A DNA stretch of 64,000 nucleotides from Octopus sinensis (GCF_006345805.1 NC_042997.1:156674001-156738000), one strand, 5' to 3'. Positions 3,001-61,414 are shown, counted from the first letter of the stretch. Notes: generated by a model from the letters alone, not told the origin. Translations and numbers: made by a program.

Positions 3001-3479
3001 AAACTCTATGCATATATGATATTTTTAGTCAGAAATATTTTTGCAAAACTAAGCACCATTCGAGTGTGATGGTTACCAGCGTCACCTTACTAGCACTTGT
3101 GCCGGTGTACAGCTGACACGTAAAAAAATAAAAACACTGTTTGGGCGTGGCCATTGCCAGTACTGCCTGACTGGCCCTCGTGCTGATGGCACGTAAAAGC
3201 ACCCACTATACTCTCGGAGTGTGCCAGATCATGATTGGAGCCTGGTGCAGTCAAATCGTCTAATCCATGCTAGCATGGAAAGCAGACGTTAAACGATGAT
3301 GATGTTGTATGTGGGACTTATTACACTTTTGCAAAATACTAAACCACTGTCCAATCTTCATCTGAAGCTGCTGAAGATATGATAGTTTGACCAAATGTAC
3401 CAGCTATTGCGAGCAAAATTAAATACCCTAAAAATGCATTTACTAAATTTGAACATACAACAGTTTAACATAAAAGCAA

Positions 3480-3545
<66 letters not shown>

Positions 3546-3548
<3 letters not shown>

Positions 3549-4733
3549 CAAAATCAAATCAAATCAAATCAAACCAAATCAAAATAGATGAACATCAATG
3601 GAATTTGTATCTTTGTGGTACCAGTACCGGTGGCACACAAGAAAACCATCCGAACATGGCCGTAGCCAGTACCGCATCGACTGGCCTCTGTGATGTGGGC
3701 ACATAACAAACACCATCCGATCGGGCCGTCCGCCAGCCTCATCTGGCACCTGTGTCGGTGGCACATGAAAACACCAACCGAAGACCCGGCAAGACTAGTC
3801 AGGCCATAACCCATGGCCCTACTTGGGACGTAGTCAGTCCACCTGTGCATACCTTCCTTCCTTCTTGTGACACTTGTGAAGACCTGTTGAGGCAAGTGAA
3901 AATCAAATCAAATCAAATCAAAATAGATGAACATCAATGGAATTGTATCTTGTGGTACCAGTGCCGGTGGCACACAAGAAAACCATCCGAATGTGGCCGT
4001 AGCCAGTACCGCATCGACTGGCCTCCGTGCTGTGGGCACGCAACAAACACCATCCGATCGTGCCGTTCGCCAGCCTCATCGGCACCTGTGTCGGTGGCAC
4101 ATAAAAACACCATCCGAAGACCCGGCAAGACTAGTCAGGCCATAACCCGTGGCCCCTACCTGGGACGTAGTCAGTCCACCTGTGCAACCTTCCTTCTTGT
4201 GACACTTGTGAAGACCTGTTGAGGCAAGTGAAAATCAAATCAAATCAAAACAAATCAAAATAGATGAACATCAATGGAATTTGTATCTTGTGGTACCAGT
4301 GCCGGTGGCACACAAGAAAATCATCCGAACGTGGCCGTAGCCAGTACCGCATAGACTGGCCTCCGTGCTTTGGGGACGTAACAAACACCATCCGATCGTG
4401 GCCGTCCGCCAGCCTCATCTGGCACCTGTGTCGGTAGCACATAAAAACACCATCCGAGCGTGGCCGTCTGCCAGCCTCGTCTGGCACCTGTGTCGGTGGC
4501 ACATAAAAACACCATCCGAGCGTGGCCGTTCGCCAGCCTCGTCTGGCACCTGTGTCGGTGGCACATAAAATCACCCACTACACTCTCGGAGTGGTTGGCG
4601 TTAGGAAGGGCATCCAGCTGTAGAAACACTGCCAGATCTGACTGGCCTGGTGCAGCCTTCGGCTCCCCAGACCCCAGTTGAACCGTCCAACCCATGCTAG
4701 CATGGAAAACGGACGCTAAATGATGATGATGAT
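3546..4733 (+). mobile_element. Tandem trimer of an RTE 3'UTR module (about 338-bp period) ending in VNTR, conserved tail and (GAT)n
   Basis: aaaatagatgaacatcaatgg recurs at 3581, 3920 and 4257. 62-bp repeats at 4387, 4449 and 4511. Flanked by (TA)n on both sides. Confidence 0.85.
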
Positions 4734-4984
4734 GATATATATATATATATATAAATTTAGAAAAAGCACCTTTTATCAATTCAAAATGAACAATTAAATT
4801 ACACCATCTAGAAAATTACATTTAATAGAAATATTAAAAATAAAATAACAATAATATACCGATGATTAAGTAAATTGCAAAATAAAAATAATAAACATAT
4901 ATATATATATATGTAATAATATGATTCGTATGGGATTTAATTTGATGATGATGTTATTCAACTTTTTCTTTGTATTTCTTTCAG

Positions 4985-5210
4985 TTTGATGCTGAATTTC
5001 GCCGATTTGCCATTGATAAAGATGGCAACTACCAGTTCGAGGACTTCCATGAACTGGTGGAAAAACTTCATCAGCTTCATCGCATTCCATTTGTGATTAC
5101 CTATACAGACCCAGCCCATGGTGATCTGCTTCCTATTAATAATAAAGACAATTATTTAAAGGCTGTCTCTACAGCTCGACCATTGTTACGGCTACAAGTG
5201 CAGCGGAAAG
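4985..5210 (+). CDS. PARD6: Par-6 coding exon (PB1 domain); internal exon, phase 0 acceptor / phase 1 donor
   Basis: Acceptor tttctttcag|TTTGAT at 4985 and donor AAAG|gtcagt at 5211. Translates FDAEFRRFAIDKDG...YTDPAHGDLLPINNKDNYLKAVSTARPLLRLQVQRK, the Par-6 PB1 signature. 226 nt = 75 codons + 1. Confidence 0.96.
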
Positions 5211-7308: not shown

Positions 7309-9027
7309 CTGTGCATGTGTCTGTAATTATACCCCCCCCCCACCATCACTTGACAACTGATGCTGGTGCGTTTACGTCCCCATCACTTAGCAGTTTAGCA
7401 AATGATACCAATAGAATAAGTCAACTAAAGCCTGTGAGTGGATTTGGTTGACGGAAATTGGAAGAAGCCTGTCATATATATATGTGTATATATGTTTGTC
7501 CCCCCACCATCATCTGACAACTGATGTTGGTGTGTTTAAATCCCTGTAACTTAGCGGGTTGGTAATAAGAAACCGATAGAATAAGTACTAGGTTTACAAA
7601 GAATAAGTCATGGGGTCGATTTGTTTGACTAAAGGTGGTACTCCAGCATGGCTGCAGTCAAATGACTGAAACAAGTAAAAGAATAAGAGAATATATGACA
7701 AATTTCTTTTCAGTTTCCCTCTATCAAATCCACTCACATGGCCTTGGTTGGTCCAAAACTGTAGTAGAAGACACTTGCCCAAGGTGCCACACAGTGGGAC
7801 TGAACTCAAAACCATGTGGTTGGGAAACAAACTTCTTAACCACACAGCCTCATTGTGACAGAAAGAGCATATCTCTTGTTCATCCAACAGGCTATTTTGA
7901 GGATTGAGAATCAATAAATATGAGTATACTACCATATAAATAACTGGTGGCTTACTGAGATTCTTTTACTAGTCTCAGCCATTGGGTTGTGTCTATTCTG
8001 GTACCATTATATAGATTTGTATACTGCAATATGACTTGATGTAACTTCAGTGTTTAGAATAAAAGGAATCAATACAATAGCCGGTATCTGTTTTATGGAT
8101 TTTGTGTTGTCTTTTAGAAAGGCATTCCTAAAAATGTCTTGAATATTTGATTTTTACTTTTATCAGTAAAGTCAAACAATGATTCTTATAAACATTGCTG
8201 AAATAATAATTGGGTTATAAAATGTATAGAATTATGGGTTGGTGAAATGGATAAGCAAGAAAATGAAACATCGGTATTTTCCTGTTGTTCTTCTAGAGTG
8301 TAACTAATATGGTGACATATTTAATATGATAAAAATTGACTCTTATGAAATAGCTATATAATTTCCTGGTTTTAATTAGAGACACAGGCATAGCTGTGTG
8401 GGTATGAAGTTCACTTCACAATCATGTGGTTTCTGGTTCAGTCCTACTTCACAGTACCTATGGCATTTTCTACTATAGCCTTGGGCTGACAAATGCCTTG
8501 TGGTTGTGACGTTGTGTGGAACCCTGTCTTGTGTGTATGTATACACACAGACACACGCACACATTGATTTCCCTTAAGCATAGTGATACCAACAACCAGT
8601 TGTTAAAACTCAATATTCTAATGCTTTGACATTGTCAGGAGAGTACAGTGCGTAATATCAATAAATCAATTGCAAAAGAACAGGAGTTATATAATCACCT
8701 TCATTAGACTATGGTTTTTTTTGCTATAAGAAACAGTGAACTCTGAGCTGAGTGCTTGTGCAACATCTTATAGCTTCTGTAGAGCTATTAGAATTGTGTA
8801 TGTTTATTTTTTCATCACCATTGTTTAATGTCCACTTTCCATGCTGGCATGGGTTGGACAGTTTGACATGGAGCTGGTTAACAAGGAGCTGTCCAAATTC
8901 CAATTGCCTATTCTGGCATGATTTCTATGGCTGGATGCCCTTCCTAAAACCAAGGAGTTAAATCATAATTTACACACACACATATTGAGTTACTATAGAA
9001 TTTATTGTTGTCTAACAATAGTTACAA

Positions 9028-14202: not shown

Positions 14203-14843
14203 GTGAGAGTTATGGTGAAGTGAATGGTTATGGCTCAGGACCAATGAAAAGGAAAAATCCAATTTCAAAGTTGATAGGAACTGGAGAGGCATCACCAAAG
14301 CCACGTCTTAGGATTGGTATGCCTGAGGAATTCCGCCGTGTCTCTGCTATTATTGATGTTGATATTGTGCCAGAGACACACAGACGTGTGAAACTCATGA
14401 AAAATGGTTCTGATAAACCATTGGGATTTTACATACGAGATGGTACTAGCTTCCGTGTGACTACCTCTGGGGTGGAAAAAGTACCTGGAATTTTCATTTC
14501 TCGTCTAGTTCCAGGAGGCCTTGCTGAAAGCACTGGCCTTCTGGCTGTGAATGATGAGGTTTTGGAAGTGAATGGTATCGAGGTGATGGGCAAGACTCTT
14601 GACCAGGTCACGGACATGATGGTTGCAAACAGCGCTAATCTGATTATCACTGTTAAGCCTGTGAATCAGCGAATGACTTTGGCTCCACAACGAGGTGGCT
14701 ATGGCCGCCATTCCCAGCTGTCGAATAAGTCACAGCAGTCTCAACAATCGGGGAAGTCCTATGACAGCGATGACGAAGATGATGTACAGGAGCTCCTTAG
14801 TAAGGAAGAGAAGGATAAAGACGGTCCTGTGGTTGTATTGTGA
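14203..14843 (+). CDS. PARD6: Par-6 terminal coding exon (semi-CRIB + PDZ + C-terminal PDZ-binding motif)
   Basis: Long polypyrimidine tract then ttttcag|GT at 14203, phase-compatible with the 5210 donor (G+GT=Gly). Encodes [17 protein letters not shown] (semi-CRIB), [21 protein letters not shown]...[30 protein letters not shown] (PDZ) and ends DGPVVVL-TGA. Confidence 0.97.
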
Positions 14844-14876
14844 GGGATGGTGGGAAAGTAAACAAAAATAATAAAC

Positions 14877-15021
14877 GTATATATATGTATTTACACATGT
14901 ATGTATATATACATGTGTGTATAAATACACATGTATATATATGTATACACACATGTATACACATGTATACACACATATGTATCTATGTATATACACACAT
15001 ATGTATGTATGTACACATATA

Positions 15022-15053
<32 letters not shown>

Positions 15054-15104
15054 CACACACATGTATATATATATATATATATGTATATATACACACACAT
15101 GTAT

Positions 15105-15140
<36 letters not shown>

Positions 15141-15201
15141 CAAGCACAAATATGTATGCATATATATACATGTATGTGTATATATATATATGTATATGTA
15201 C
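14877..15201. repeat. Mixed TA/TG/CA alternating purine-pyrimidine tract
   Basis: About 325 nt of nearly continuous RY alternation starting 34 nt after the par-6 stop. Confidence 0.9.
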
Positions 15202-15726
15202 ATTCTGGTGATGAGTGGAGTTATTGCTGTTGGCATTGTTATTGTTCCCCTCTTCCTCCTTCCCACCCCCCTTCAAAAATTCTCTATAATTTACCAACAC
15301 AAATGGACAGTGGGGTCAGAGAGAAGCTGTCTTAAACTAAATGCGTTTTACTAAGCGTGTTAAAACTAATGTCGAGCCTTCATTCATTTACATGTTCATC
15401 TCATTATGTTTCATCATGTGAGAATGGGTATCTAACTTTATATAATTAAATACACACACACTGACACACAGTATAATAATACCTCATACTACAAACACTA
15501 TCACACACTGAAACATGCATGCACCAACTACACATACACACAAATGCATATTTATATTATATATAGGTATGCATACTACATAGCTTTACATACACGCATT
15601 AATTAAATCACATGCACACAGACAAACAATTGATTAGTATCTTTCTTAATTTCTATTTATTTCTATGTCTTACTTTTCAATTTCATTTACCAAACATGGT
15701 TATATACATTTATTAATGTATGTATG

Positions 15727-15759
<33 letters not shown>

Positions 15760-15760
<1 letters not shown>

Positions 15761-16120
15761 CACACCTGTTTGTTTAGTCTACATCCATATATACACACAT
15801 CTGTATATTTGGTTTACATCTGTAAATGTGTTCACACGTGTTTATTTGGTTTACATCTGTAGATGTGTACATACACATCTGTTTATTTGATTTACATCTG
15901 TACATGTATGCAAGCACATTTATTTACATCTGTATGTGTGCATTCACACATTTTTTAAATTTTATTTTTTCATCTGTAGATGTCTTTATACATAAACATC
16001 TATTTGGTTTACATCTGTACATTGTGTACACACAGCTGTTTATTTGGTTTACATCTGTACATTGTATACACACATCTGTTTATTTGGTTTACATATGTAT
16101 ATATGTGTACACAATTTTTT
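15760..16120 (+). repeat. Degenerate about 39-bp minisatellite in the presumed par-6 3'UTR
   Basis: Roughly 8-9 copies of tttatttggtttacatctgtacattgtatacacacatctg. Confidence 0.8.
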
Positions 16121-16472
16121 TCTATATTTGTGTGTACATATTTGTTTATTTAATTCACATTTGTACGCTGTGTGTATGTATACACACCAGTTTATGTTTC
16201 TATGTATTCATGTTTATATTCATGTTTATTTTACATTCATATGTGTGTATGTACATACATGCACACACACATTTGTCTTCTACATTTGTGTGTGTGTATG
16301 ATTTGTCGAGATTTATTCTTGTGAAAGAGTGCCCATCTATTTATTTAGTTTATCTGTGTATGTATGTATGTATGTATGTATGTGTAAACAGTTGTGCTAT
16401 GTTTTCATCTGTAAATGTGCGTCCATCTGTTTGCCTGATTTTTACATCTGTTCATGCATGTATGTATGTGTG

Positions 16473-16527
<55 letters not shown>

Positions 16528-17450
16528 CCCAATTCACCACCATATTTTCTCTTCTTTCTTTGTGTGTGTATTCATGATTTGATTTGCATTCATGCATATA
16601 TGTGACTTTAACTGTATATAAAGTGCACATAATTTCACGTACCCCCACACAATCAAACACACAATATTATATGTAAATCAATGTATAATAAGTTCAGACT
16701 ATTAACCTCATTTCTAGAGATGAGAATATTTTTCTATAACATCTACATCTATACTATGTTTCAACCAGTTTATCAGTTATCATCAGATGTCTAACCTTGA
16801 TGTGTGGAAAGTGCCAAACTAGATTTGAACTAACAGTCTTTTATTTCTAATCTGTGTTAATAGTATAGTGAATAAGAGTATTACTACCCTTAATTTAAAG
16901 AGTATTACTACCCTTGATTTAAAAATAAATGTACCTTTATAAAAATCCAATCTTCTGCTATGTATGTATGTATCCATATATAAGATAACTGATGATGGAC
17001 CAGAGATAAACAAAATCAAAACTTAGTGTAGATGTAAATACTGAATATTTGTGCTTTTATCTCTGAAGATGAGATTGTTAGTCTGAAAACTATAATCTTT
17101 TTAACAACTCCTCATCTCAGGCATTTAAGTGTGTGTGTGTGTGTGTGTGTATGTATGTCTGCATATATGTGTGTGTGTGTGTGTGTGTGTGAGAAATTGT
17201 TTAGTTTCTACCCTTAGGGTGCCATAATCTTTACCTGTGTGTGTACGAGTGTCTTTATGCTACCTGTATGTCATACTTGCGTTGATACCCATTTTTATGA
17301 CAGTAAAATGTCAACTCCATCAGTAGAATCTACTGTTTTACTCCTTCCTCAGTCGTGTTTCAAGTAACATCTATGTATATGTCCCTTCTTGTACTCTCTC
17401 TTACTCGTTGTGTATGCAGCTATCTATCTACCCATCTTGACTTTATATAT

Positions 17451-17491
<41 letters not shown>

Positions 17492-18880
17492 CATATTACA
17501 TACACTGACATGCCTGTGTGTCTATATGTGATTGTTCCTTTCTTTATAAGTCATGTGTGTAGTTTGTCTTGTGTTCTGTCTATTTATTATATGTTGTAAT
17601 AGCTCCACTATCAACTTGGTTTAAAACATATCAACTTAAAATGCTATATTTATACCCCCAAACACTCCTGTTTATAAATAGCTCTATCTGTCTTTATATA
17701 TATATATATATATATATATAATCTTTCATCAGGGTTGAGGTGATTCCCTATTTAATTATCCATTTTCCTTTTGGCCTCTCTAAATGATAAATTTTTGTTT
17801 ATTTATCATTTTTGCTTTTTACTACATTCATTTTTTTTTGTCATATTTTATTTTCCTTTTGTTTACCAAAGAGAAATTTTTCATAACATCAATTTTCCTG
17901 TTCAATATTCCTGTTATGTGTATCTAACCAGCGTGTGTGTATGTTTAGATTTGTGTAGCAAGAAACTGTAGGGTTTAGGAAGTGGGGACACATACACACT
18001 TGTGCGTATACTCACTCAGATTCTTTTCGCTGTTTGTGTGTGTATATGCATGCAATACATGTAGTTATAGATGAATGAGGGCATATGTATGTATACACAC
18101 TGAGTGTATATCCCCTTATATCGTAGTTAGGGACTATTTTGTATTTGGGTTATCAGATTGAAAGACATGTTATCACACATTATTACATACCACATAGAAA
18201 TAGTGCTCATTAGCTTTTTTTCTTTTGCTCTTTCAAAAAGCATTAACTTTCCCAGTTAGACTTATTCTACTTGTGTTGATAAAGGCATAAATCACTACAG
18301 CACTTTATCAATATTCAAAAGGTTGTTTTCTTTGGCACATTTACATATATAATTACTACTGTGTTATATATACGTGACCATGGCTGTACACAATATGTAT
18401 GTTTTTATGTCAGATAAAAATAGTGTAATATAACAAATAAGATTCTCTGCTAGTTAAATGTAACCAAGAAATGCAACAAATGGCTGCACAAAATATAAAA
18501 TTTATATTTTTTATTGTGAAGACTATAAAGAGAATTATATTATTTTTTCAAATGGCCCCACTTCATCATATTTTTATAATTCCACTACTGCCTCCGTAAG
18601 CAGTTAATTTTTGTGCACTATTTGATATTTAAATAGCAAAACAAAGGAAAGCATATCTGTTAAATCTCTGATGCTCTTGTGCATTTTGAGAGAAAAATCA
18701 TAATTTCTGAAAAACTATATTGCTATGTTTGTGTATTTGTTTTTCATTATTCTTGATGTGACAACATGTGTTGAGACAGAAGATGGCTATCCCTAAGTAT
18801 AACAATAAGAATCTTGAAATGTTGACTAAATGCAAAATTGTTTGTCTACAGATAAGATGCCAAAACTTTTTTAGATTCTG

Positions 18881-18912
<32 letters not shown>

Positions 18913-20813
18913 CATGAGAGAGAGAGAGAGTCTAGTTGGACAGCATTCTAAAATCATAGCATTCTCAGTGTATCTGATATGGATTTCGTCCCCTCTTTAT
19001 TTGAATATTTCAAACTTTGGTGCAGCTGGAAAATAAAATATTTAAAAATGAAAATTTCGATATAACTGTTAATTTGAATTTTATTATTTTTTTTTATTTA
19101 TTACAATTTTTGTTTTCTCTTTAAAAAAAAATTTTAACATTTTTATTTCTGCATTAGAAATTTAAAGAAAACTTTTTTGGCCTTTTGGGATTTGGTTCAT
19201 ATAATGAAATATTTACATTGAATAAAATGATAAAGAAAGGAATTATTAAAAATTTTTTAATAAGTTTTTTTATTTGTTTGTTTAAATATTTTGTTTTTCA
19301 AATAAAATTATAATATAAAACTTTCTAAACCAAAATATTTAGTTCATTTCTATTTTCTATGCTAGATAAACCATTTAAGTTCTCTGCCCTTCAGCAAACA
19401 ATTTTCAGTCTGTTTTGGTTTCTGTGAAAGGACAACTGGGCTTATATTTTATCTCTTGCCACCAAACATTATTTAAGGCTAATATTGTCCTTGGAAAAAT
19501 TATGAACATCACACAACCTGATTTGCATTCCTTTTATTAATATAGATCGTAATGCCCATACCAGAAACTAACAAGTAATTATTATTAATTATACTTGATA
19601 TTTCAAATGCAAGGCATTGAAAAAAATTAAATTTTTAAGAATGCTAGATAAATTAACTATTTTTCTATTCACTAAAGTTTGGTATCTCAGAATTATGCAA
19701 ATTATTATTTTTTTCTTTTGTAACTTAGACATTAAAATAACAACTATGTTTTGCAGTTTATGAATACAGAACACAGATTTTTTTGCCCTTCCCAACAAGC
19801 AAAAATATCCTTTGCTGACTGAACTGAATTTCTATTGAGCTTAATATATCATACATGGTAACAATTGCAGAGATTTTTTAATATATATTTATATTTTTGA
19901 CTAAGTGATGCCACAGTAAATACTAACTGCATTTAAACTAGCTAAACTAAAATATTGATTACTAAACAGTTTCAGATTTCATTATAGTTTTCTTATTTTT
20001 CCATGTCAAAATAGAGGACACAAAATGTAACCAAAACCAGAAGTCTTTCACTGATACTTCTCAGAATAATAAAATATCAGATTTTATATTGAAAATTTGT
20101 AAACAAACTATTCAAAATCAAAGATCATCGCAGTTCCAAAATGTGATGTTCACCTGAATCTAGTTTATATTTGATAATTACTAAAAGACACTGTTATGAT
20201 GAGTCTTGGCCAAACCTTACTTTACAATTGATTTTTCACTTATTTTCTTATCTTAGTAATATAAAAATCCAGTCTTGTTAAATTACCTATGCTAAATAAT
20301 TGTTGGAGGTTGCAGCTTACCTCAGCTTGTCTAGAAATAATAGCTATTAATAGCAATTATTAAAAAAAAAATGAAATAAATGAAGAGAAAATCTGATGGT
20401 GAAAGGGGGAAAAAAAACTATATTTTTATAATAAATTTAAGGAAATTCATTCCTATTATATGGAGAATATCTAAATATCCTTGAAAAAAATCTTATGCAA
20501 GGTAGCACAAATGCCGACAAAACAAATTACTAATCATTTTATAATCCTTTGCTGATAGCTTACCTCTGGACTAACTAAACTAATTTAATCTATTTCTTCA
20601 TAGCCATTCCAGATATTATTACATCTTTGTAAAAAGAAACAAAAAGAAAAAAAAAATGCATGCTTGGATTTTATTTTTCTATGATCTGGTTTTTTGTTCT
20701 AATCTTTGTCAACTAATCATCATAGCTATGTTTGTCCATATATTTAGTGATCATGTCATTTCATCTAAAACTTTGCCATACATTGGTATTTTGAGGTTTA
20801 ACTTTCTTTGCAG

Positions 20814-20911
20814 GTGCTGATTATGACAAACCACTGGAAGATCGCAATAAAAGTAAAAGAAAATATCAACCTCTCAGGAGATATAGTCTGGCATACTGGT
20901 TAGGGTTTTGA
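20814..20911 (+). CDS. PARD6: Candidate alternative terminal exon of par-6 (xADYDKPLEDRNKSKRKYQPLRRYSLAYWLGF*)
   Basis: Acceptor tttaactttctttgcag|GT. The frame stays open for 32 codons to TGA 20909-20911 when entered in phase 1, the phase of both the 14800 internal donor and the 5211 donor. AATAAA at 21103-21108. No transcript evidence. Confidence 0.5.
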
Positions 20912-22145
20912 TGTCTACTGCCTGTGTGGAAGTTGGTTGAATATTGTGGCAGCATAGTATTTCTTGATGTGGGGCAACATTTGCTGTATAAACTGAAACA
21001 TTCTTCAAGATTATAGAGCCACATTTCTCTATGTAGGACTTTTAATTTCCTTGCTAATGAATTAAATATTATAGTTTCAAACTGATGTGTTGTTGTTTTT
21101 TAAATAAAAATATTCTATACAGAAATTGGTTATTGTAGTTGTTGTAAATGCTAAACATCAGAATCACTGATTTTATGCATCTCTCTTTGCACATCTTCAT
21201 CATGGTAAAGAATTCCCTTCTTCATGACCTGAAAAAACTTTAACTCTTCAACATTCAGATCACTCTGTCACATGTAATTAATCATACATTATCTCATACC
21301 TTCAAGATTTCAATATGATTGTGCAATTTTAGAATGGCATTGTAGGATAAGTGTGAGGGGTCAGATCTAACTGGTTTGAACATAAAACAGGTAGAATATT
21401 TGAGCCAGATTAAATGCTAAGATGTTAAACTTTAACAACTACCAACCTTATGCAAAATGTGACCTACATAGGGTATTGGTCCCACATCTGAGACGGTGCT
21501 ACTGGTACACATAAACATCCTAGACTTTATCAAAAGAGGAAAATAGAGATGGTAGCACCTGACTAATTGGTATGAAAATATTCACCAACATACTTTAAAT
21601 TTTCTGGTCCACAAACATGACATTTCCTCTCTCTCTCTCTCTCTCTTTTCTACTGTTACTTACAGTACAGCTGGCTGATATTGTGCCTCCTCCACTCAAG
21701 TGCTCCCAAATCACTCATGCATACTGTGTTTCCACCGCCAAGCCCCATGCTAAATGCTATACTGAGTTCTCTGGAAATTCACTTCTGTGTATGTCTTTCC
21801 AGCAATCAACTTGCATTCTGTTCAGTCTTGGTAGTTTTTAAGGGTCTGTAAAAACAATGGGCTCTTTCTTTCATATCAATATAAGACCACTGCCTTTTTT
21901 TATATCACTTAAGGAACCTGTGATGTCAATATAAATATGTGTGACGAAGAATTTCTAATTTTCAAGTCTGTTGTAATGCTTTTGGTAAACGAATGTTACC
22001 ATCAAAATATGTTTTAGATCTTTAATCTGAACATATTTAAAAACTTCCAACCATTCTCTTGACATTGCAAATGCCTCATCAATCATTTTATACATACATA
22101 TATATATATATCTTCTTTTACTTATTTTATACATATATATATATC

Positions 22146-22510
22146 TTTTACTTATTTCAATCATTTGAATGTAGTCATGCTGGAACACTGCCTTTAGTCA
22201 AACAAATCGACCCCAGGACTTATTCTTTGTAAGCCTAATACTTATTCTATTGGTCTCTTTTGCTGAACTGCTATGTTACAGGGACATAAACACACCAACA
22301 TCAGTTGTCAAGTGATGGTATGGGGACAAACACAAATACATACATACACATATGGGCTTTCAGTTTCCATCTATCAAATCCACTCACAAGGCTTTGGTTG
22401 GCCCGAGGCTATAGTGGAAGACACTTGCCCAAGATGCCACACAGTAGAACTAAATCCGGAACCACGTGGTTGGGAAGCAAGCTTCTTACCACACAGCCAA
22501 GCCTGCACCT
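22146..22510 (-). mobile_element. Full-length SINE family A copy
   Basis: Reverse-complement match by eye to 43629-44024. Confidence 0.8.
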
Positions 22511-24238
22511 ATATATATATATTCGCCTTATATATATATATATATATTCTCCATTGGCATTGCTTTATTTCATTTTACAGTTTCACTAATATTAAGCTCA
22601 TTGTTATTGCCTCCTGTTTCCATTTTTTTATTATTAATGTTTGCTGTGTTTTTTGTATATTTTTAATTGATAAATATTTAACGAATTCTGTGCAAGCAAG
22701 CCTATACAGACCATTTAAGGCATTTTTACATTTGAGTTTATTTAATGCTTAATGAAATTCTTGGTTTGTTTGATGTATGACTCTAATAATCCTGCTGGCC
22801 TTCTGTGTTTCTAGTTTTTCACTTGCTTTGTGGTTTGTAGAGTGACTCATTGCAATAGGAAGCTATTTCAGGTCAAGTTTGAAGCTGACTAATTCTGAAC
22901 TCTCTTTTTAACCTTCTCTTACATCACACACTGCAAATGGGAGAAGATATCACAAAGAATGTTAGCCATTTCTCTCTCTCTCTCTCTCAACATTTTCAGC
23001 TTTTTATTTAAATTACTTTGGCAAATAAATGTTGTTTCAAGGTGGTAGGTTTTAAATGTACTGTTGACCTCATCTAAACAAGATATTAGAAACTATTAAA
23101 AAAGTACTTCTAGTCATTTATCTTGGACATTTAATTTTGGTTTGTTAATAAAAAAGAAACACACTCAAATGGCTACAAAGTGATTTTGTTAAAACATTCA
23201 AGGAAGCACAAGAAAAAAGGGGAGCTTACAGTGATATATGGAGGGATTTTCAAAAATATATGCTTCTGTAACTGAAAAACCAATATGGTTTTATTAAATA
23301 GGTAAAAGCTGATTTAATGTTTAGAATATTAAAAAGCCACATTACTATGCTGCGGAACAGAAGAATAACAGAAGACCAATATAGTTTACAAGTATGGAAG
23401 ACAACACTTACCATGTTCTGCTCTTGGAACTTTTCAGTGTAATTTTTATTTGTTTTTTTTTTCTTTTTCTTGTTTCAGTCATTGGACTACAGCTATGCTT
23501 GAGCATTACTTGAAGGGTTTTAGCTGAACAGATCAACTTCAGTATTTTTTTTTTTTTTTAGTTTGGTACTTATTCTATTGGTTTCTTTTGTTAAACTGAA
23601 AAGTTATGGGAACATAAACAAACCAACACAGGTTGTCAAGTGGTGGTGGGGCAACAGACATAGGCACAAAGATGTGCTCACACACACATATATATACATA
23701 CATATATATATATATGTATTATATATGGTAAATGAAAGTCAGAAGATGGAACATATGACAATTTTTATTATTAATCACGATGATTGTTTCAACATGTCTA
23801 GCATTGATCCCTCATACGTGGGACACTTAACAACTGGTTCAGAAGCATCTAGTGGTGCAGATGTGCTTCATTGGGTGATAAATAGATACAACTCGTTAAA
23901 ATAACATTTCCGCATGACAGGCTTAGTGGGCTTCTTAGCTATACAATCCTGCCGTGTTGAACTAACAGTAATTAATCACTAAGTAAGAAAAGCATATGAC
24001 CAAGTATTAGTAGTAACACTGACAAAATAAAAGATAGCTCAGGAGGGGTTGTAGAGATGCTGGAGTTGAGGTGAGTAGAAATGTACTGAGAAGAGTTAAA
24101 ATGAAAGAGAGCTTAAGCAAAATTCTTCACATTCAAGAAGCATGTGTTCATTTAATGTGTGTGTTTTTTTTTTTGCCATGTCGGTTGAACAGGGAGTTGT
24201 GTGAGGCAGGATTTTAAATGTGCTTTCAGTCACTAACC

Positions 24239-31606: not shown

Positions 31607-33205
31607 ATCATCATCATCATCATTTAGCGTCCGTTTTCCATGCTAGCATGGGTTGGACGATTTAACTGGGGTCTGTGAAGCCGGAAGGCTTCATCAGGCC
31701 CAGTCAGATTTGGCAGTGTTTCTACGGCTGGATGCCCTTCCTAACGCCAACCACTCCGTGAGTGTAGTGGGTGCTTTTTACGTGCCACCTGCACAGGTGC
31801 CAGACAGAGCTGGCAAACGGCCACGAACGGATGGTGCTTTTATGTGCTACCGGCACGGGGGCCAGGCGAGGCTGGCAACAGACATGAACGGATGGTGCTT
31901 TTATGTGCTACCAGCACGGGGGCCAGGCGAGGCTGGCAACGGACACAAACGGATGGTGCTTTTACGTGCTACCGGCACGGGGGTCAGGCGAGGCTGGCAA
32001 CGGACACGAACGGATGGTGCTTTTACGTGCTACCGGCACGGGGGCCAGGCGAAGCTGGCAACAGACACAAACGAATGGTGCTTTTACGTGCTACCAGCAC
32101 GGGGGCCAGGCGAGGCTGGCAACAGACAAACGATCGGATGGTTTATTAACCACAGCTGCAATTTCCACTGATGTTGATTTGGTTTGATTTTGACTGTTCT
32201 CACTGGTCTTGCCGGGTCTTCTCACACACAGCATACTTCCATAGGTCTCGGTCTCTAGTCATTTCCTTGGTGAGACCTAAAGTTCGAAGGTCGTGCTTCA
32301 CTACCTCATCCCAGGTTTTCCTGGGTCTACCTCTTCCACAGGTTCCCTCAACTGCTAGAGTGTGGCACTTTTGCACACAACTATCTTCACCCATTCTTGT
32401 CACATGCTCATACCAGCGCAGACGTCTCTCTTGCACACCACAACTGATGCTTCTTAGGTTCAACTTTTCTCTCAAGGTACTTACACTCTGTCGATTATGA
32501 ACACTGACATTACACATCCATTGGAGCATACTGGCTTCATTTCTTGTGAGCTTACGCATATCCTCAGCAGTCACAGCCCATGTTTCACCACCATGTAGCA
32601 TGGCTGTACGTACACATGCATCATACAATCTGCCTTTTACTCTGAGCGAGAGGCTTTTTGTCACCAGCAGGGGTAAGAGCTCTCTAAACTTTGCCCAGGC
32701 TATTCTTACTCTAGCAGTTACACTTTCAGCACACCCACCCCGGCTACTGACTTGGTCACCTAAGTAGCGGAAGCTATCAACTACTTCTAGTTTTTCTCCC
32801 TGGAACATGGTAGATATTGGTCTCTGCACATTTTCAGTGTTTATTGCTCCTGAGCATCTGCCACAGACAAAACTATTTTCCTAGTTAGCCTTCCTTTGAC
32901 ATTGCTACACCTCTTATGTGTCCATAGCTTGCACTTGGTGCATCTTATAGAGTTTCTACCTACACCTTTTTTACAGATCGAGCAGGGCCATCTACCTGAA
33001 GGCGTTTGTGACTTTCCTACTTATTAGGACTTTGGTTTTGGCTAGATTGATTCTGAGGCCCTTCGATTCTAGACCTTGCTTCCACACCTGAAACTTCTCC
33101 TCCAGTTCTGATAGTGACTCAGCAATTAGAGCAAGATCATCAGCATAGAGGAGCTCCCAGGGGCATCCTGTCTTGAATTCCTCCATTATTGCCTGGAGGA
33201 CTAAA
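31607..33205 (-). mobile_element. 5'-truncated RTE-clade LINE (RT C-terminus, Cys/His finger, C-terminal domain, 3'UTR VNTR, (GAT)n tail)
   Basis: LQAIMEEFKTGCPWELLYADDLALIAES, then ORF 32200-32829 (FRYLGD...LYDACVRTAMLHGGETW...ERRLRWYEHV...RGRPRKTWDEVV), frameshifts between them, then a 61-bp tandem array and (ATC)n on +. Confidence 0.93.
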
Positions 33206-33477
33206 CGTACTGAAATACAAAATTGCTTGAGTTTAGCCAAGCTTTCAGTTTTGTTATTTTCTACCCACAGAAGTGTAGTTAGTATTTTAGATGACAAAGT
33301 AATTAACAATAAACATTATACATGAAGATGAAACCTTTGTTAATATTTCAACAGTATCTGATTAAGGTTTTTGATGTTTCAACCAAAATACGATAACAAT
33401 TATAAAGAGTATGTTTAATCAATCAAAACAAATTTTCTTTGTTATTCAGTACAAAAATTTTCAGTTACCAACAAACT

Positions 33478-39223: not shown

Positions 39224-39708
39224 CATACACGATGGGCTTCGACACAGTTTCCATGACACAGTTTCCATCTACCAAATTCTCTTACAAGGCATTAGTTGAC
39301 CTGAGGATAGAGTAGAAGACATTTGCCCAAGATGCAGTGCAGTGTACTAGAAGCTGAAACCTCGTGGTCGCAAAGCAAGCTTCTTAACCACACAACCATG
39401 CCTGTGCCTCAGTCCAATCTATTTGGTTTTGTTGCAAAGATGAGGCACAATTCTGTTGTTATTGTTATTGTTATGATGATCATCATCATTGTCATCCTAA
39501 CAACTACAACAATAAAATTATGACTCATTTTTACAATAAAATTATATAGATTGGATATTAAAAATAATTATCAGATCAAATATATTTTGAGCATCTCCCA
39601 AAATACAATCTACAAAATACCTCACAACTTTATTATAAATAGTGAAAAAAGTGAAAAATGAAAAGAAAAAGCTAGGGATTGGGAAAACTTGCAAATATTT
39701 TGAAATAC

Positions 39709-39975
39709 CTCTGTTCCATAAAATTCTGAAGTAAGACCTGCTGCTTGTATTTCGTTGAAATCCTCCTCTGTCACAGACTTTATAAAGAAATGTAGTACAA
39801 AATTTCTTTCTTTGTAAATATGTGATACAAGATGGTCACTATCTTTGATAGAGTATTTGTCAAGATTTAAAGCAATTTCTTCTTGTAGCTCTCGGTTTAG
39901 TCCCATCACAATTGTTTCATTTGCCTCCACAGCGCCACCAGGAAATCCTATGCATCCATCAAAGCGAAACTGCAT
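39709..39975 (-). CDS. NUDT16: NUDT16 exon 2 (Nudix box)
   Basis: Acceptor ttttag|ATG and donor GAG|gtattt. MQFRFDGCIGFPGGAVEANETIVMGLNRELQEEIAL contains the family MQxRFDGxxGFPGG motif and a Nudix box. 267 nt, phase 0/0. Confidence 0.95.
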
Positions 39976-43826: not shown

Positions 43827-44024
43827 GTGTGTGTATGTCCCCCACAACATCGCTTGACAACTGATGCTGGTGTGTTTACATCACCGTAACTAAGCGGTTC
43901 GGCAAAAGCGACCGATAGAATAAGTACTAGGCTTAGAAAGAATAAGTCCTAGGGTGGATTTGCTCGACTAAAGGCGGTGCTCCAGCATGGCCACAGTCAA
44001 ATGACTGGAACAAGTAAAAGAGAA
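43629..44024 (+). mobile_element. Full-length tRNA-derived SINE (family A) with CpGs intact, in NUDT16 intron 1
   Basis: A-box-like TGGCTGTGTGG 43639-49, B-box-like GGTTCAGTCC 43682-91, central (TA)n(TG)n, tail ...gactggaacaagtaaaagag. Many relatives in the window (e.g. 66-200, 6824-7690, 7700-7850, 8380-8520, 31270-31545, 39225-39410, 49110-49470, 60200-60370). Confidence 0.85.
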
Positions 44025-44160
44025 TACAAATATGAAACGTCAAATTTTCGTCTACATCTTTTAGTTTTAGTATTTCCAACTTAGAACAACAAAATTTAAT
44101 AAAGCGGAAAACGGCCGAGATAGAAAGAGAAAAGGACGAACAGCAGATAAACATGCTTAC

Positions 44161-44373
44161 CATGATGTTAGCTTTTATCGTGTTCCCAAACCAAGCTTTA
44201 TTCGTTCGGCAATATATCATACAATGGGCGGCATGGTCATATTCCGACGTAGGAACATCATTAACACGAGGAGATAGAAGTCGAACGAAAGTCATTTCCG
44301 AACTGTTGTCACATTGTGATCGGTCGTCGTCGGGGCAGCTGTTCATGACGACTCCTTCTGTGAAACCCGCCAT
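44161..44373 (-). CDS. NUDT16: NUDT16 (U8 snoRNA-decapping Nudix hydrolase family) exon 1
   Basis: ATG at 44373. MAGF...EYDHAAHCMIYCRTNKAWFGNTIKANIM matches the family HACHAxLY...LFG..IP...IL pattern. Donor ATG|gtaagc at 44160, phase 0. Start codon choice is less certain than the 3' part. Confidence 0.85.
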
Positions 44374-48905: not shown

Positions 48906-51760
48906 TGAAAGTTATACTCTTGGAGATGAGGATAATCGTTATATGAATGATTAGTTCCGCTAAAAACAAAAGTAGAGAAAACAGCCCTGAAATTTTAATC
49001 TCCATTGTAGATTACTACAATCCCTTTGATTACTCATAAAAACCTTTCTATATACAGTTAACCTGCTGCTAATTTTGGCCTATGTTATAGTCCCTTAATC
49101 AGGAAATTAATGTGGTAAGAAGCTTGCTTCCCAACCATGTGGTTCAGAGTTCAGTCTCATTGTGTGACACCTTGCACTAATGTCTTGTACTAAAACCTCG
49201 GGTCAACCAAAGCCTTGTGAGTGGATTTGGATGCATTTATATATATATATGTATGTGTGTGCTTTTTTGTGTCCATGTTGTCTCCCACCACCACTTGACA
49301 ATTGGTGTTGGTGTGTTTACATCCCCATAACTTAGATGTTTGGAAAAAGGGACTGATAGAATAAGTATCGGGCTTTTAAAAAATAAGTACTGTGGTTGAT
49401 ACATTCAACTAAAAATTCTTCAAGGCAGTGCTCCAGCATGGCCATAGTCTAATGATCAAAACAAGTAAAAGGTAAAAGGTATACAAGTAATGCTTACATG
49501 GCTATTGTCCTCATATTTGAATTTTAAAGTACAGGAAAGGTCTCTTCACTGGATTTGGCAAACGGTTCCTTATTATAGGAACTCTTCAACCACTAACTGG
49601 AACTTGTTGTGTGACCCTGAGACATTCTATATCCTACCTACTGGCCAGTAGATAGAATTCTTGAGGTCCCCTTAATGACACAACGAAATTGAAGTCAAAC
49701 GAAGCTCATCTGATTGAGATCAGCTGTGCATTATTAATGAGGACATTTAAATTGCCTGCTTTGTGACCTGCGGTCATTTCTGCCCTCATTTTTGGCACCT
49801 CCCCTAATAGGTGATCTCTTTTCTTCAAAGCAATTGATAAGAAACATATCAGTGATTTTTCTTTGTTTCTTTTTTATGATTTTGATCTAAGCTTAGAAGG
49901 CTGGCTAAGATTTTACAAGTGCAAAGGTTATGTTTCAGACCAAAATGAAGTAACAGTAAGACAGAGGGAGAGGGGAGAGAGAGAGAGAGAGAGCAAGGAG
50001 AAGGGTAGGGAGTGAGAGAAAGCAAGGAGAGGGGAGAAAGAGAGAGAGAGAGAAGGAAGAAAGAGAGCAAAAGACACTTGTACTACACTTGCTTGATATG
50101 TAGATAGGGATTTGATAAGCACTTACCTCTGTGTACACAGTGCAAAGAATAAAAGCACAAAAGATTCTGGATTTCAGGCAAACTGATAGGGAATCAGAAC
50201 TTTAAAATGTGCTAGAAGTACAGCAATAATGACTGGTTGGGCTACTCATGAAAAAGTTATAAACTGTTTGAATGACTCACTAGAAAACGTTGATAGTTTC
50301 TTGTTTTCTTATGTAACCTAAATAATCCTGGAGCACTTTTAATGAAAAAATATGAGCCACAATAGAAAGGTGGTGGTGGTGGTGGTGGCAGTGTTGTTAA
50401 CAAAGGCTTCTTTTATATATATATGTATGTATGTATATATATATATATATATAATGGGGATTACATGCTAGAGCTACATGGTAACTGAATACAGAAGTGC
50501 ATAGACATGTAATGTAAGCTGGCTTGAAATGTGGAGCTGATTTGAGATATATCAATGGTGATAGTGGTGGTAGTGGTAGTGATCGTAGTGGTGGTGGTGG
50601 TGGTGATGATTATGATGAGCATTGATATCCCATTTACAAATAACTCTTGAGAAATTTTCAAATCAACCACGAGTTCATGTTTGTGGTATAGCCCCCAGGT
50701 CAACCACACTTGAGTAGGCCTATGACTGAAGGCGTTCTAGCCATAACTTTTCCATCGTTTTAGGAGTATTTGAAGTATACTATCCATCATGTTCCTTATT
50801 TTGTTTAAGTTGGCAAGGTATGTTTTGAGGACTATTTAGCTGCTGTTTCTCCCAGGTGAAGCAACCTTGTAGACACTCTCATTTTCTCAACTCAAATGCA
50901 GGAAGATGTAAGCTTGTTAATTAAAGATAAAATATTGTGGTCTGACCATATTAGGGCAATATCTGGTGTTTGTTTGCAAGTAAAGAACAACTATGGACAT
51001 GTTTCAGTCTATTTTCATATTTTGCTTTTATACTTTCTACATTATATCTAATTTCTTGTAAATCTCTCCCTCTCCAGAATAACTTCTAAAAAAAATGAAC
51101 TCTACTAATTCCTTCTATTGAAGCTCTTTTAAATTGTCTCAGATGATGGGATATCATTTATTTCCCTGAAACAACTGTAAGACCACATTTCTATTTATAA
51201 ATATTCTATGAATATCAAATTGCTTTGGCCTTGTTATCTTACTTTATTTAATACTAGCAGTAATACCTGTCATTGATCAGGTAATTACTTTAACTCTTTC
51301 TTGGGAGCCACATTCAAAGTGTTATTATATATATATTTACTCCTCCTGTATGTGTGTTTTTTGTAAGAAAAAAACATGTAATAATTGAAGTAGAAAAAAT
51401 ATAAATTTCATACATGAACTTCTGTTTGTTTATTATATGACAACAATACGCAAGTTGTATGCATTATTTTATATATCAATACAGTAATAGCAATTATATT
51501 ATACACAAGGCTTTGATTGGCATGGAGCTGTAATGAAAGAGAATTGTCTAATGTGCCACACTGTGGGACTGAACCCAAGGCAACATGGTTGGAAAACAAG
51601 CTTCTCAACAACACAGCCATACTTATAAAGGAGAGATACATTTTGTATAATGTAATCCTTGATACAATATGCTTAACAAAAGATAGGATGTTTACGGCAA
51701 GAAGATCTTTGATTTTAATATTTACTCGTGCAACACAACCACTAACAATGCTGCACCATA

Positions 51761-52228
51761 CAGGATGTTCCAGAATTAACTATCTGTTTCAATGAAATTG
51801 AGCAAATTTTAAAAAAACTGACAGAATTTTATTATGAAAACAAATAGATTTATAAATCTTATGTCAAACTTTTATTGAAAATTTTCAATATGTCTGTATC
51901 CCTGCATACTTCAAATCTCTCCCTAGCATTGTGAAACACATTTTGAAGCATTTCAGGAGTTAGCGCGTGCACTGCTAACTGAATGTGTTCTTTAAGCTCA
52001 GCTGAACGATTGCTCCATCTTGGGGATGGAGATAAAGAAAATGATTGTTGCTATATTGAAAAAAAGTTGTGGACAAATAAGAGTCCATCAAGAATAAAAA
52101 TAAAATTATAAGCAAAATTCACAATTTATACATTTTTAACATATTAAACATAATAAACATAAATAAAAGTGAGTTTTAAAAAATGCATCCAATTTCACTC
52201 AAATCATCATTAATTCTGGGACACCCTG
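51761..52228 (-). mobile_element. Tc1/mariner deletion derivative (MITE-like), TA TSD
   Basis: TIRs caggatgttccagaattaa / ttaattctgggacaccctg with TA at 51759-60 and 52229-30. Internal minus-strand ELKEHIQLAVHALTPEMLQNVFHNARERFEVC resembles a transposase C-terminus. Confidence 0.8.
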
Positions 52229-58844: not shown

Positions 58845-60118
58845 ATAATGAAATTATTGTATACAGTGCTCAGGTGCATCACAACTTGTCAGAAAGTGCA
58901 TATAAAGTACATGCAGTAGTGTAGAAATGTCTGGAAAGTGAACATGCTTGTGTGTGTATGGAGGGGAGAAAATCAAGTGTAGTGTTGGCGAATCTCAGGA
59001 AGCATGGCAGTCTTGAAGGATGCAGTGCTCCGACAACTAACAACCGATGTCGGCAGTTTGTTCCACGCTTCAGCAACTCTCAGTGTGAAAAAATGTTTCC
59101 TGAAGTCATGGGAGCTGTGCTGTTTTCTTACTTTGTAAATATGTCCACGGGTGTTAGATGGGTGGAGTTTGAAGAGGTGCTCAGAGTTATTGTTTGTGCG
59201 ATGGTTGATAATTTTATGGGTGTCTGCCAAGTCAGCTGCCAGACGTTGGAGTTTCAATGTGTCCATGCCCAGGGAAGTAAGGCGTTCAGGATATGGCAAA
59301 TGCCTGATGGAGGGTATTCTTTTGGTTGCACGTCGCTGAACAGCTTCCAGACGATTGATGTCCTGGGCAAGATAGGGGTTCCAGACCGGTGATGCAAATT
59401 CCTGGTGAGGTCTTACCATAGCTATATAAAGCCACAGATAGATAGCCGGAGAGCGGCTCACAAAGGATTTGGTGAGTGATGCCAAGACACCCTCAGCCTT
59501 CTTGACAATTTTAGCGATGTGTTTTGTCCAACGCAAATCACTGTTGACAATAACACCCAGGTCACGTTCACTTGAAGACTTTTTGAGACTAGTGTTGTGG
59601 AGGGAGTAGGTGGACGCTGGGTTTCTCCTCCCAAAATGCATGGTGGTACATTTGTCCACAGCCAGCTTGAGTTGCCAGTCCATGATTCACTGTTGCATTG
59701 TGTCCAGGTCTGCTTGCAATAGAGATCCATAGTGTATAGGATTTGACCTCTTTATTTCGAGGTACAGCTTGATGTCATCTGCATATTTCAGCACTGTGGA
59801 ATTCTTTAAGTTGGCATCTATGTCATTAACATATGCAACAAATAAAAGGGGGCCAAGAACAGATCCCTGCGGCACACCAGATGTCATCTCATAGGGCGAA
59901 GAGTGCTGTCCTAGAACTGTGACAACCTCTTTTCGGCCGAAAATAAAGGACTTTAACCAGTTATAGAGTTCGTCTCTTACACCCAACGCAGAAAGCTGCA
60001 CCATAAGTCTTTTGTGTGGCACAGAGTTAAAGGCCTTAGCAAAGTCCAGGTAAACAACATCCACCCAGGATCCGCGATCAGTGATTTGGGTAACGTCCTC
60101 AAGAAACTCGATGAGTAT
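58845..60118 (-). mobile_element. 5'-truncated CR1/L2-type LINE (RT to 3'UTR)
   Basis: YLDFAKAFNSVPH, SGVPQGSVLGPLLF, KYADDIKL, ERDLGV, RPHQEFASPVWNPY, LEAVQRRATK, LRVAEAWNKLP. The two track ORFs (59687-60124, 58973-59683) are in the same frame, separated by one TGA. Confidence 0.93.
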
Positions 60119-61414
60119 GAACAATTCAGAGAGAGAGAGGAAGTGGAAAAGTTGTTTTTTTCCAAAAAAAAGCTAGACAATATTTAAATTATATACATAC
60201 ACAGGTGCAGGAATAGCTGTGTGGTAAGTAGCTTGCTTACCAACCACATGGTTCTAGGTTCAATCCCATTGCGTAGCACCTTAGGCAAGTGCTTCAACAA
60301 TAGCCTGGGGCTGACCAAAGCTTTGTGAGTGGATTTGGTAGATGGAAACTGAAAGAAGCCCTTCGTATATATATATAAAGTCATTATTAAGAAAATCGGC
60401 ATTTTTTTCTATTTGCTGCTGATAAAAAACTGCATTCCTCCACCTCCTGCCCCACCTCCTCCTGTCCCTGCTCCTTCCTCCTGCCTCTCCTTTGCTGCTG
60501 CTACCATCACTGTCATCATTTAACATTTGCCTTCCCTGCTGGCATGAGTTGGATGGTTTGGCAGGAGCAAGCAAGCCAAGGGACTGCACCAAGCTCAACC
60601 GTCTGTTTTAGCATGGAAACTGTAGTAAAGCATCAAAGTCCTTGCTATTAGCTATGAACATTTCCTCATGGCCAGACATATTTTCCCTAGAAGACTGGAA
60701 ATTAGCAAAATCACTTGTGTGACAGTGATCCTTGTTAATAACCATCATGATATCAAAACAAGGGTCCATAGAAACACATACACGCATCACACACAAACAC
60801 ACACACATACACACACATGTATGTGTATATGTCACTAAATCTTAGAGGTTGAAGAAATGAGACTGATAGAATAAGTACTCTTTTTTTGAAAAAAAAATGT
60901 ATTGGAGTTGATTTGTACCTCTTCAAGGAGGATAGGCAGGAGGAGGAGGGGCAGGAGGAGGTGGGGCAGAAAAGTTTATAATATTAAATAAATAGGTAAT
61001 TAATTATTGCAACATAAAATATATAAGTTTCTATTAAGCAAAAGGTAGAATTATTATCTGTAGTTTTTATTCTTTATTTATCCATTAAGCATAATGTAGA
61101 ATTCTTGTCTGCAGTTTTTGTTCTTTAGATATCCAGTGTTGTCATCAATTTTAGTTGATAAATATACTAATTTTCTACATTAGTATGGTATTTTTTATAT
61201 TTGATTTTTATAAACTTAATTAGTTATTCAATGACGTCGCTCTTGATTGAATGAATGTCTAAAGTTAAATTTGGTTTGGCATTTCTTTTTGCTAATGTTT
61301 TTTAACAGCTAAAATTTTTTCAGAATTTTACCAATTTGGATTACCTTGATAATGTTGTGTTGACATAAATTTTCGTGCATATTATTATTAAATTTTAATA
61401 ATATTATGTATATA

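Follow-up and report, generated by a model that had tools for sequence, protein, structure and literature searches.

A conserved alternative terminal exon exchanges the C-terminal PDZ-binding tail of Par-6 in octopods

Alternative last exons that exchange a PDZ-binding motif (PBM) are an ordinary kind of system built on a familiar mechanism. The choice between the secreted and membrane forms of the immunoglobulin mu heavy chain is the classic case of a composite internal/terminal exon, and among polarity proteins the Crumbs3 isoforms CRB3a (ERLI end) and CRB3b (CLPI end) arise via alternative last-exon splicing. Here we describe a related arrangement at the locus of the polarity gene par-6, which lies in a 64,000-nucleotide stretch of the Octopus sinensis genome (100% identical to assembly GCA_006345805.1, chromosome CM016859.1; hereafter the window, in whose coordinates all positions are given). 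As in immunoglobulin mu, a 5′ splice site within the last coding exon of octopus par-6 probably competes with a presumed nearby poly(A) site, and use of the donor leads to distal terminal sequence that brings a new C-terminus and a new 3′ untranslated region (3′UTR); unlike in immunoglobulin mu, the octopus distal exon encodes a short basic tail rather than a transmembrane anchor. The likeness to CRB3a and CRB3b lies in the exchange, by alternative splicing, of the PDZ-binding C-terminus of a polarity protein for a non-PBM tail, although CRB3 is a different protein that is both vertebrate-specific and transmembrane.

Par-6 serves as a polarity scaffold throughout the animals, and debate surrounds what its C-terminal PBM does. 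The fly Par-6 PBM binds PDZ1 and PDZ3 of Par-3 weakly (Renschler 2018, as cited in PMC9352551), and in the purified Drosophila complex the motif contributed no measurable binding energy (PMC9352551). The PBM of mammalian Par6 beta binds Par3 PDZ3 at ~1 µM and promotes Par3/Par6 condensates, for which the motif is reported to be essential, whereas Par6 alpha, with its different end, shows no Par3 PDZ3 binding; PARD6B/G (ITL end) are the binding paralogues and PARD6A (FSL end) the non-binding one (PMC7211019). The premise of an initial annotation of the window, that the hydrophobic Par-6 tail binds Par-3 PDZ domains, is thus backed by the literature, with its weight disputed. In vertebrates, as in octopus, one animal has Par-6 versions that carry a Par-3-binding tail alongside others that lack it, although vertebrates arrived there by gene duplication and octopods by one gene with an alternative exon.

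The single octopod Par-6 gene very probably ends in a composite exon with two outcomes, either canonical read-through or splicing to a distal exon. The gene has three coding exons, a layout also found in Haliotis and Ostrea, of which the first (MGSPQQ...IEVKSK) lies upstream of the window and the other two are given in Table 1. Within the last of these, the internal donor (CTTA/GTAAGG, with the GT at 14800-14801) splits a Ser codon, AGT, after its first base, 14 codons before the TGA stop, and its GTAAG is the only GT(A/G)AG in the exon. The acceptor at 20813/20814 reads ctttctttgcag/GT, and the exon that it opens begins GTGCTGAT... When the donor is ignored, translation would run on for 14 more codons to the ancestral PDZ-binding tail, and the mRNA would probably end at the AATAAA that follows the canonical stop. 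When the donor is used, the 6-kb intron would be removed and the distal terminal exon joined, leading to a 32-residue tail and a different 3′UTR. Every sequence feature that the initial annotation had listed (donor, acceptor, frame, AATAAA, and PB1 exon) is present where it was placed. The annotation had also proposed a PB1-only product via a 5210>20814 join, which is arithmetically in frame given the phase 1 shared by the donors at 5210 and 14799, although no such model or protein was seen.

The predicted Par-6 splice isoform is real and is already listed in public (RefSeq, ENA) annotations. The O. sinensis protein XP_029636463.1 ("partitioning defective protein 6 isoform X1"), which has the same sequence as CAI9716174.1 of O. 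vulgaris, ends in ...VQELLSADYDKPLEDRNKSKRKYQPLRRYSLAYWLGF, which is exactly the product predicted by the 14799>20814 splice. The proposal that this splice swaps the PDZ-binding tail for ...SADYDKPLEDRNKSKRKYQPLRRYSLAYWLGF and a new 3′UTR therefore agrees with the annotated isoform residue for residue. The same tail with one D>E change is carried by the O. bimaculoides protein XP_052827343.1 and by two older models of that species (P0125/P0126), and the orthologous tail of Argonauta hians (GAB1597513.1) ends in ...DLLSAEYDSPHEERNKSKRKYQPLRRYNLGYWLGF. O. vulgaris has an annotated protein with the canonical tail (CAI9716175.1), such that the annotation of this species, in which alternative forms were added by PASA from RNA-seq and Iso-Seq data (PMC10700109), has both forms. 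The canonical tail is also found in a fully spliced (exons 1-3) Logan transcript contig from another octopod (L007/P0127; SRR3401912), which reads through the internal donor. A literature search found no paper on Par-6 C-terminal splice variants; what is added here beyond the annotations is evidence on conservation, lineage restriction, and mechanism rather than the discovery of the isoform.

On sequence alone, the pairing of this donor with this acceptor is a reasonable guess that is not statistically distinctive. Between 14850 and 24000, 20 YAG sites have an equal or better pyrimidine tract by a crude measure, and six of these open phase-1 tails of at least 32 codons. The pairing is raised above chance by the identical annotated proteins and by cross-species conservation.

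For the latter, we compared the locus with its orthologs in O. vulgaris, O. bimaculoides, and A. hians; Argonauta falls in another family of the incirrate octopods. All four species, as well as two other octopod read assemblies, share the donor 12-mer CTTAGTAAGGAA without any difference. The alternative intron has GT-AG ends in each of the four species, with lengths of 6251 nt (O. vulgaris), 5987 nt (O. bimaculoides), and 9261 nt (A. hians) for the orthologs. Most of this 6-9 kb intron is unalignable between Octopus and Argonauta, and the alternative exon is among the few collinear, single-copy islands that do align. Comparing O. sinensis with Argonauta from 5′ to 3′, identity was 59% with 12 gap columns over intron positions -114 to -48, 89% (42/47) with none over the 47 nt directly preceding the exon (-47 to -1), 84% with none over the 95 nt of the alternative coding part, and 65% with 18 gap columns from the stop through the 3′UTR to the AATAAA. 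Argonauta keeps the acceptor, frame, stop, coding length, and AATAAA of the alternative exon.

The dN/dS ratio of the alternative tail (Nei-Gojobori, Octopus vs. Argonauta) was 0.18 over its whole length and 0.04 over its last 22 codons, in which seven synonymous and two non-synonymous changes were counted. The first nine residues of the tail are variable between the two genera, and the conserved core of the 32-residue tail is RNKSKRKYQPLRRY-x-L-x-YWLGF, the WLGF-COOH end being invariant despite a synonymous GGG>GGT change. In the canonical tail, the VVL* end and the stop position are kept in every octopod examined, with a dN/dS of ~0.85 across the 13 codons (Octopus vs. Argonauta). The search for the tail peptide in other octopus genomes that the initial annotation had suggested, along with its dN/dS, turned out in favor of the prediction, with the tail, frame, and splice sites kept and the ratio low. 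Between Octopus and Argonauta, purifying selection acts on the distal exon, and the overall pattern of conservation reads as the signature of a functional and probably regulated alternative coding exon.

Table 1. Par-6 features in the window. Coordinates are inclusive; slashes mark exon-intron boundaries.
Feature	Coordinates	Strand	Details
PB1-domain coding exon (second coding exon of Par-6)	4985..5210	+	phase-1 donor AAAG/GTCAGT; Pfam PB1 match
Composite last coding exon (semi-CRIB, PDZ, linker, canonical tail)	14203..14843	+	641 nt; stop TGA 14841-14843; Pfam PDZ match
Internal alternative 5′ splice site, GTAAGG	14800..14805	+	boundary 14799/14800, phase 1
Canonical tail, PDZ-binding-motif end	14802..14840	+	translated when internal donor is unused; ends ...KDGPVVVL*
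Proximal AATAAA, presumed poly(A) signal of read-through mRNA	14870..14875	+	27 nt past canonical stop
Alternative intron	14800..20813	+	6014 nt; GT-AG
X2 exon (third alternative)	19757..19818	+	O. sinensis isoform X2, XP_036361755.1, tail (I)YEYRTQIFLPFPTSKNILC*; same internal donor
Conserved intronic flank	20767..20813	+	branch-point-like TTAAC, pyrimidine tract, AG acceptor (20812-20813)
Alternative terminal exon, coding part	20814..20911	+	(S)ADYDKPLEDRNKSKRKYQPLRRYSLAYWLGF plus TGA 20909-20911; S codon uses donated A
3′UTR of alternative isoform	20912..21108	+	ends with AATAAA 21103-21108

The product of the locus is a typical Par-6, with 98% identity to the O. vulgaris and O. sinensis "partitioning defective 6" proteins and 60-82% identity to mollusc and arthropod Par-6. 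An N-terminal PB1 domain (Pfam PF00564, E = 5e-13, residues 21-100) and a PDZ domain following the semi-CRIB (Pfam PF00595, E = 4e-11, residues 164-246) were recognized, and a 25-residue block of the semi-CRIB/PDZ region shows little or no variation across an alignment of 40 sequences. Both isoforms retain the PB1, CRIB, and PDZ regions, such that the alternative isoform would keep its binding to aPKC (via PB1) and Cdc42 (via CRIB) together with its PDZ domain, and would lose or change the ligand for the Par-3 PDZ domains. The formal hydrophobic-x-hydrophobic-COOH pattern fits both ends, V-V-L in the canonical and L-G-F in the alternative tail. Of the earlier proposal that one PDZ ligand is swapped for an L-G-F end, the change of tail thus stands, while the ligand may be changed rather than removed.

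Basic-hydrophobic (BH) membrane-targeting motifs of polarity proteins were reportedly described by Bailey and Prehoda in 2015. Another report (bioRxiv 10.1101/588624, PMC7337507) deals with polybasic or BH membrane-targeting motifs in Lgl, Numb, Miranda, and the pseudosubstrate region of aPKC. The alternative octopus tail resembles these motifs in being short and unstructured, in combining Lys/Arg with aromatic and aliphatic residues, in placing a Ser in a basic context, and in an approximate BH score >0.6, a likeness of sequence only and without homology. The conserved core has a net charge of +7, in line with the basic patch foreseen by the initial annotation, and holds eight aromatic or aliphatic residues (W/Y/F/L). 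BH scores, which are approximate given a re-implemented scale (threshold 0.6 and 19-residue window per PMC6960411), peaked at 0.94 in the alternative tail of both Octopus and Argonauta, and the canonical tail was without a peak. The Ser in R-N-K-S-K-R is conserved and fits the RxxSxR kinase pattern. The alternative tail may therefore be a membrane-binding or phospho-regulated motif, in which the BH segment could bind acidic membrane lipids under a predicted control by phosphorylation at this serine.

Two observations temper this reading. The Ser of RRYS, which the initial annotation had singled out as an RRxS kinase site, is Asn in Argonauta (RRYN) and fails as a conserved feature, and AlphaFold2 applied to isoform X1 (mean predicted local distance difference test score 59, tail <50) was uninformative, showing neither a helix in the tail nor any sign that it docks onto the PDZ domain. 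It is possible, if somewhat unlikely, that the new tail serves chiefly as a PDZ ligand of another kind through its L-G-F end, or as a nuclear-import-like basic patch (KSKRK), and not as a membrane motif. Such a role would suit the invariant WLGF-COOH end and the conserved basic cluster, and some canonical Par-6 tails also end in Phe (e.g., ...AVVTF, P0005). However, the Par-6 beta ITL ligand, as seen in the Par3 PDZ3 structure, has neither Gly at -1 nor Trp at -3 (PMC7211019), and either role would be compatible with membrane binding as well. Two tails that appear to be kept under selection in one gene, the ancestral PBM and the basic tail (dN/dS ~0.04), make up a natural experiment, which argues that the tail matters in vivo, albeit in an organism that is difficult to manipulate.

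Regarding the choice between the two outcomes of the composite exon, we infer that a weak internal donor competes with read-through and proximal polyadenylation. The internal donor fits the consensus on the intron side only (TTA/GTAAGG; the constitutive PB1 donor is AAG/GTCAGT), a pattern in keeping with frequent skipping of the site. O. sinensis, O. vulgaris, two other octopods, and both Sepia loci examined have an AATAAA-like hexamer past the canonical stop. The conserved intronic flanks suggest that the choice may be regulated and possibly tissue-specific, i.e., a switch.

Several points weigh against this reading of the composite exon. The proximal AATAAA is not clear in Argonauta or O. 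bimaculoides, and the L007 contig continues for at least 37 nt beyond it, such that longer 3′UTRs are possible in read-through mRNAs. Transcript support is indirect, through gene models, and protein homology to the O. bimaculoides set of 2015 may be the source of some of them. For O. sinensis and O. bimaculoides, RefSeq holds only alternative-tail or X2 models, with the canonical-tail model absent from both. This last point would also suit the lack of any regulated switch, with one form being real and the other a by-product, e.g., where splicing to 20814 is near-constitutive and the canonical tail stems only from unspliced or intron-retaining RNA. The dN/dS of the canonical tail and the presence of upstream intron sequence in three further canonical-tail Logan contigs (L008-L010), which are thus unspliced, fall on the same side. 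Such a by-product is nonetheless improbable in view of the VVL-stop end found at the same position in every octopod examined, the fully spliced L007 that reads through the donor into the canonical tail, the annotation of both forms in O. vulgaris, and the intron-sided consensus of the donor.

Long TA/CA/TG microsatellite tracts occupy 14876-15180, starting immediately after the proximal AATAAA, and 15826-16605. Short-read transcript assemblies break off at such tracts, as each of L007-L010 does, and the 3′UTR is harder to define as a result.

It is very hard to credit that splicing noise, or an annotation artefact passed from one species to another, accounts for the junction and that the tail is functionless. 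On that side, the evidence seen consists of predicted proteins only, homology transfer is possible given that O. bimaculoides proteins served as annotation evidence (PMC10700109), and the neighboring X2 exon looks like noise, but the full set of exon features kept by Argonauta, a different family, amid a mostly unalignable intron, and the excess of synonymous over non-synonymous changes in the last 22 codons, form a pattern unexpected for non-functional sequence.

The X2 exon itself behaves differently from the alternative terminal exon. Its frame is broken in O. bimaculoides by a 1-nt indel in a T run, and no counterpart of it was found in Argonauta. A GTAACA donor at 19848 follows this exon (19757-19847 in that reading, with the tail IYEYRTQIFLPFPTSKNILC*), and we regard it as probably a non-conserved cassette, a poison exon, or noise.

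Three single-copy collinear islands in the alternative intron are conserved with Argonauta, at 17729-17827 (83-84% identity), 18478-18582 (83%), and 18993-19312 (68%). The first starts just past an acceptor-like site (...ttcatcag), and a join to it from 14799 would give ...ELL-RLR*. No Rfam match was found between 14000 and 22000, and folding of the conserved intronic islands gave no convincing hairpins (z-scores of ~-2 to +0.7). These islands could be splicing regulators, parts of a long 3′UTR, or further minor exons.

The alternative tail appears to be restricted to octopods. Two Sepia loci have ATT ACC AAA and ATC ACA AAA where octopods have CTT AGT AAG, such that the donor GT is missing, and no recognizable tail exon was found within 10 kb downstream at these two loci (tblastn/blastn of the tail and intron returned chance-level matches only). 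Among 179 Par-6-family sequences, 132 end in VTL or LHL and most others in similar motifs, with the LGF end seen only in five octopod models and a PBM closing about 170 of the other Par-6 proteins; in the other taxa examined, Par-6 isoforms differ at the N-terminus rather than the C-terminus. With neither the donor GT nor a recognizable tail exon in Sepia (10 kb searched), and the tail carried by no other Par-6 examined, we take it to be an innovation that arose within the coleoids on the branch of the octopods. An exhaustive phmmer search with the 31-aa tail gave no match among 1.84 billion cluster representatives, a result that is weak evidence for a de novo exon, since isoforms hide inside clusters.

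As for the origin of the donor, Haliotis cracherodii has CTT AGT AAA (Leu-Ser-Lys) at the homologous position, within the last 60 nt of its par-6 coding sequence (L012), which constitutes a latent GTAAA. This latent site is missing in Ostrea and Sepia, and neither Haliotis nor Ostrea has an intron at this point. A latent Ser-Lys (AGT AAR) proto-donor was probably sharpened to GTAAGG in octopods, and the new terminal exon would have been recruited from downstream non-coding DNA. A par-6 variant of the beetle Diorhabda sublineata ("isoform X1", P0100) likewise has an alternative C-terminus that branches after an acidic motif (DEIVDLT in the beetle, DDVQELL in octopus) at a phase-1 GT. The beetle sequence (GTC GAT CTT ACA G/GTAAAT ... 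cag/CT GGA; L011, 7640-7670 and 9285-9300) shares its position and phase with octopus CTC CTT A/GTAAGG (window 14790-14805). Unlike in octopus, the beetle intron is constitutive, the variant arises by intron retention with an unconserved tail, and the PBM lies on the downstream exon, i.e., the reverse layout. The shared position could mean that both genes inherited an ancient intron site, or that one module boundary has been used repeatedly.

In its fullest form, the scenario would be that intergenic DNA and a latent Ser-Lys proto-donor gave rise in octopods to a Par-6 isoform with a phospho-regulated BH membrane anchor that lets Par-6/aPKC reach the cortex without contact through the Par-3-binding PBM, with one gene doing the job that PARD6A and PARD6B/G divide between them, maybe in a tissue-specific manner (e.g., neural). 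Taken as a whole, we consider this scenario speculative and unlikely to hold in every part.

No gene other than Par-6 was called between the composite exon and the distal exon. Further along the window, an open reading frame (ORF) at 39622-39975 on the minus strand is an exon of a Nudt16-like NUDIX hydrolase gene that is convergent with par-6. The same neighbor follows par-6 in O. vulgaris, O. bimaculoides, and Argonauta as well, such that synteny is conserved. We considered the distal exon as a possible part of this gene and rejected the assignment, given that the gene lies on the opposite strand with its stop codon ~9.6 kb further downstream.

The remaining features noted in the window are repetitive. 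Two reverse-transcriptase-like ORFs on the minus strand, at 32200-33309 and 58973-60124 (motifs YADDLALIAES and YADDIKLY), indicate fragments of retrotransposons without long terminal repeats. Blocks at 3395-4779 and 31653-32187 are internally repeated, with ORFs made of reiterated ...CYRHRCQMRLADG... and ...CYRHGGQARLATD... units, which suggests that a tandem or satellite-like repeat occupies two sites in this stretch. Near-identical ORF fragments recur in both orientations at 7594-7935, 22273-22752, 43933-44373, 51517-51795, and 60281-60598 (e.g., ...SIYQIHSQGFGWPEAIVEDTCPRCHTV... and ...FYLFQSFDCSHAGVPPLV...), and their recurrence points to a dispersed family of repeats resembling short interspersed nuclear elements.

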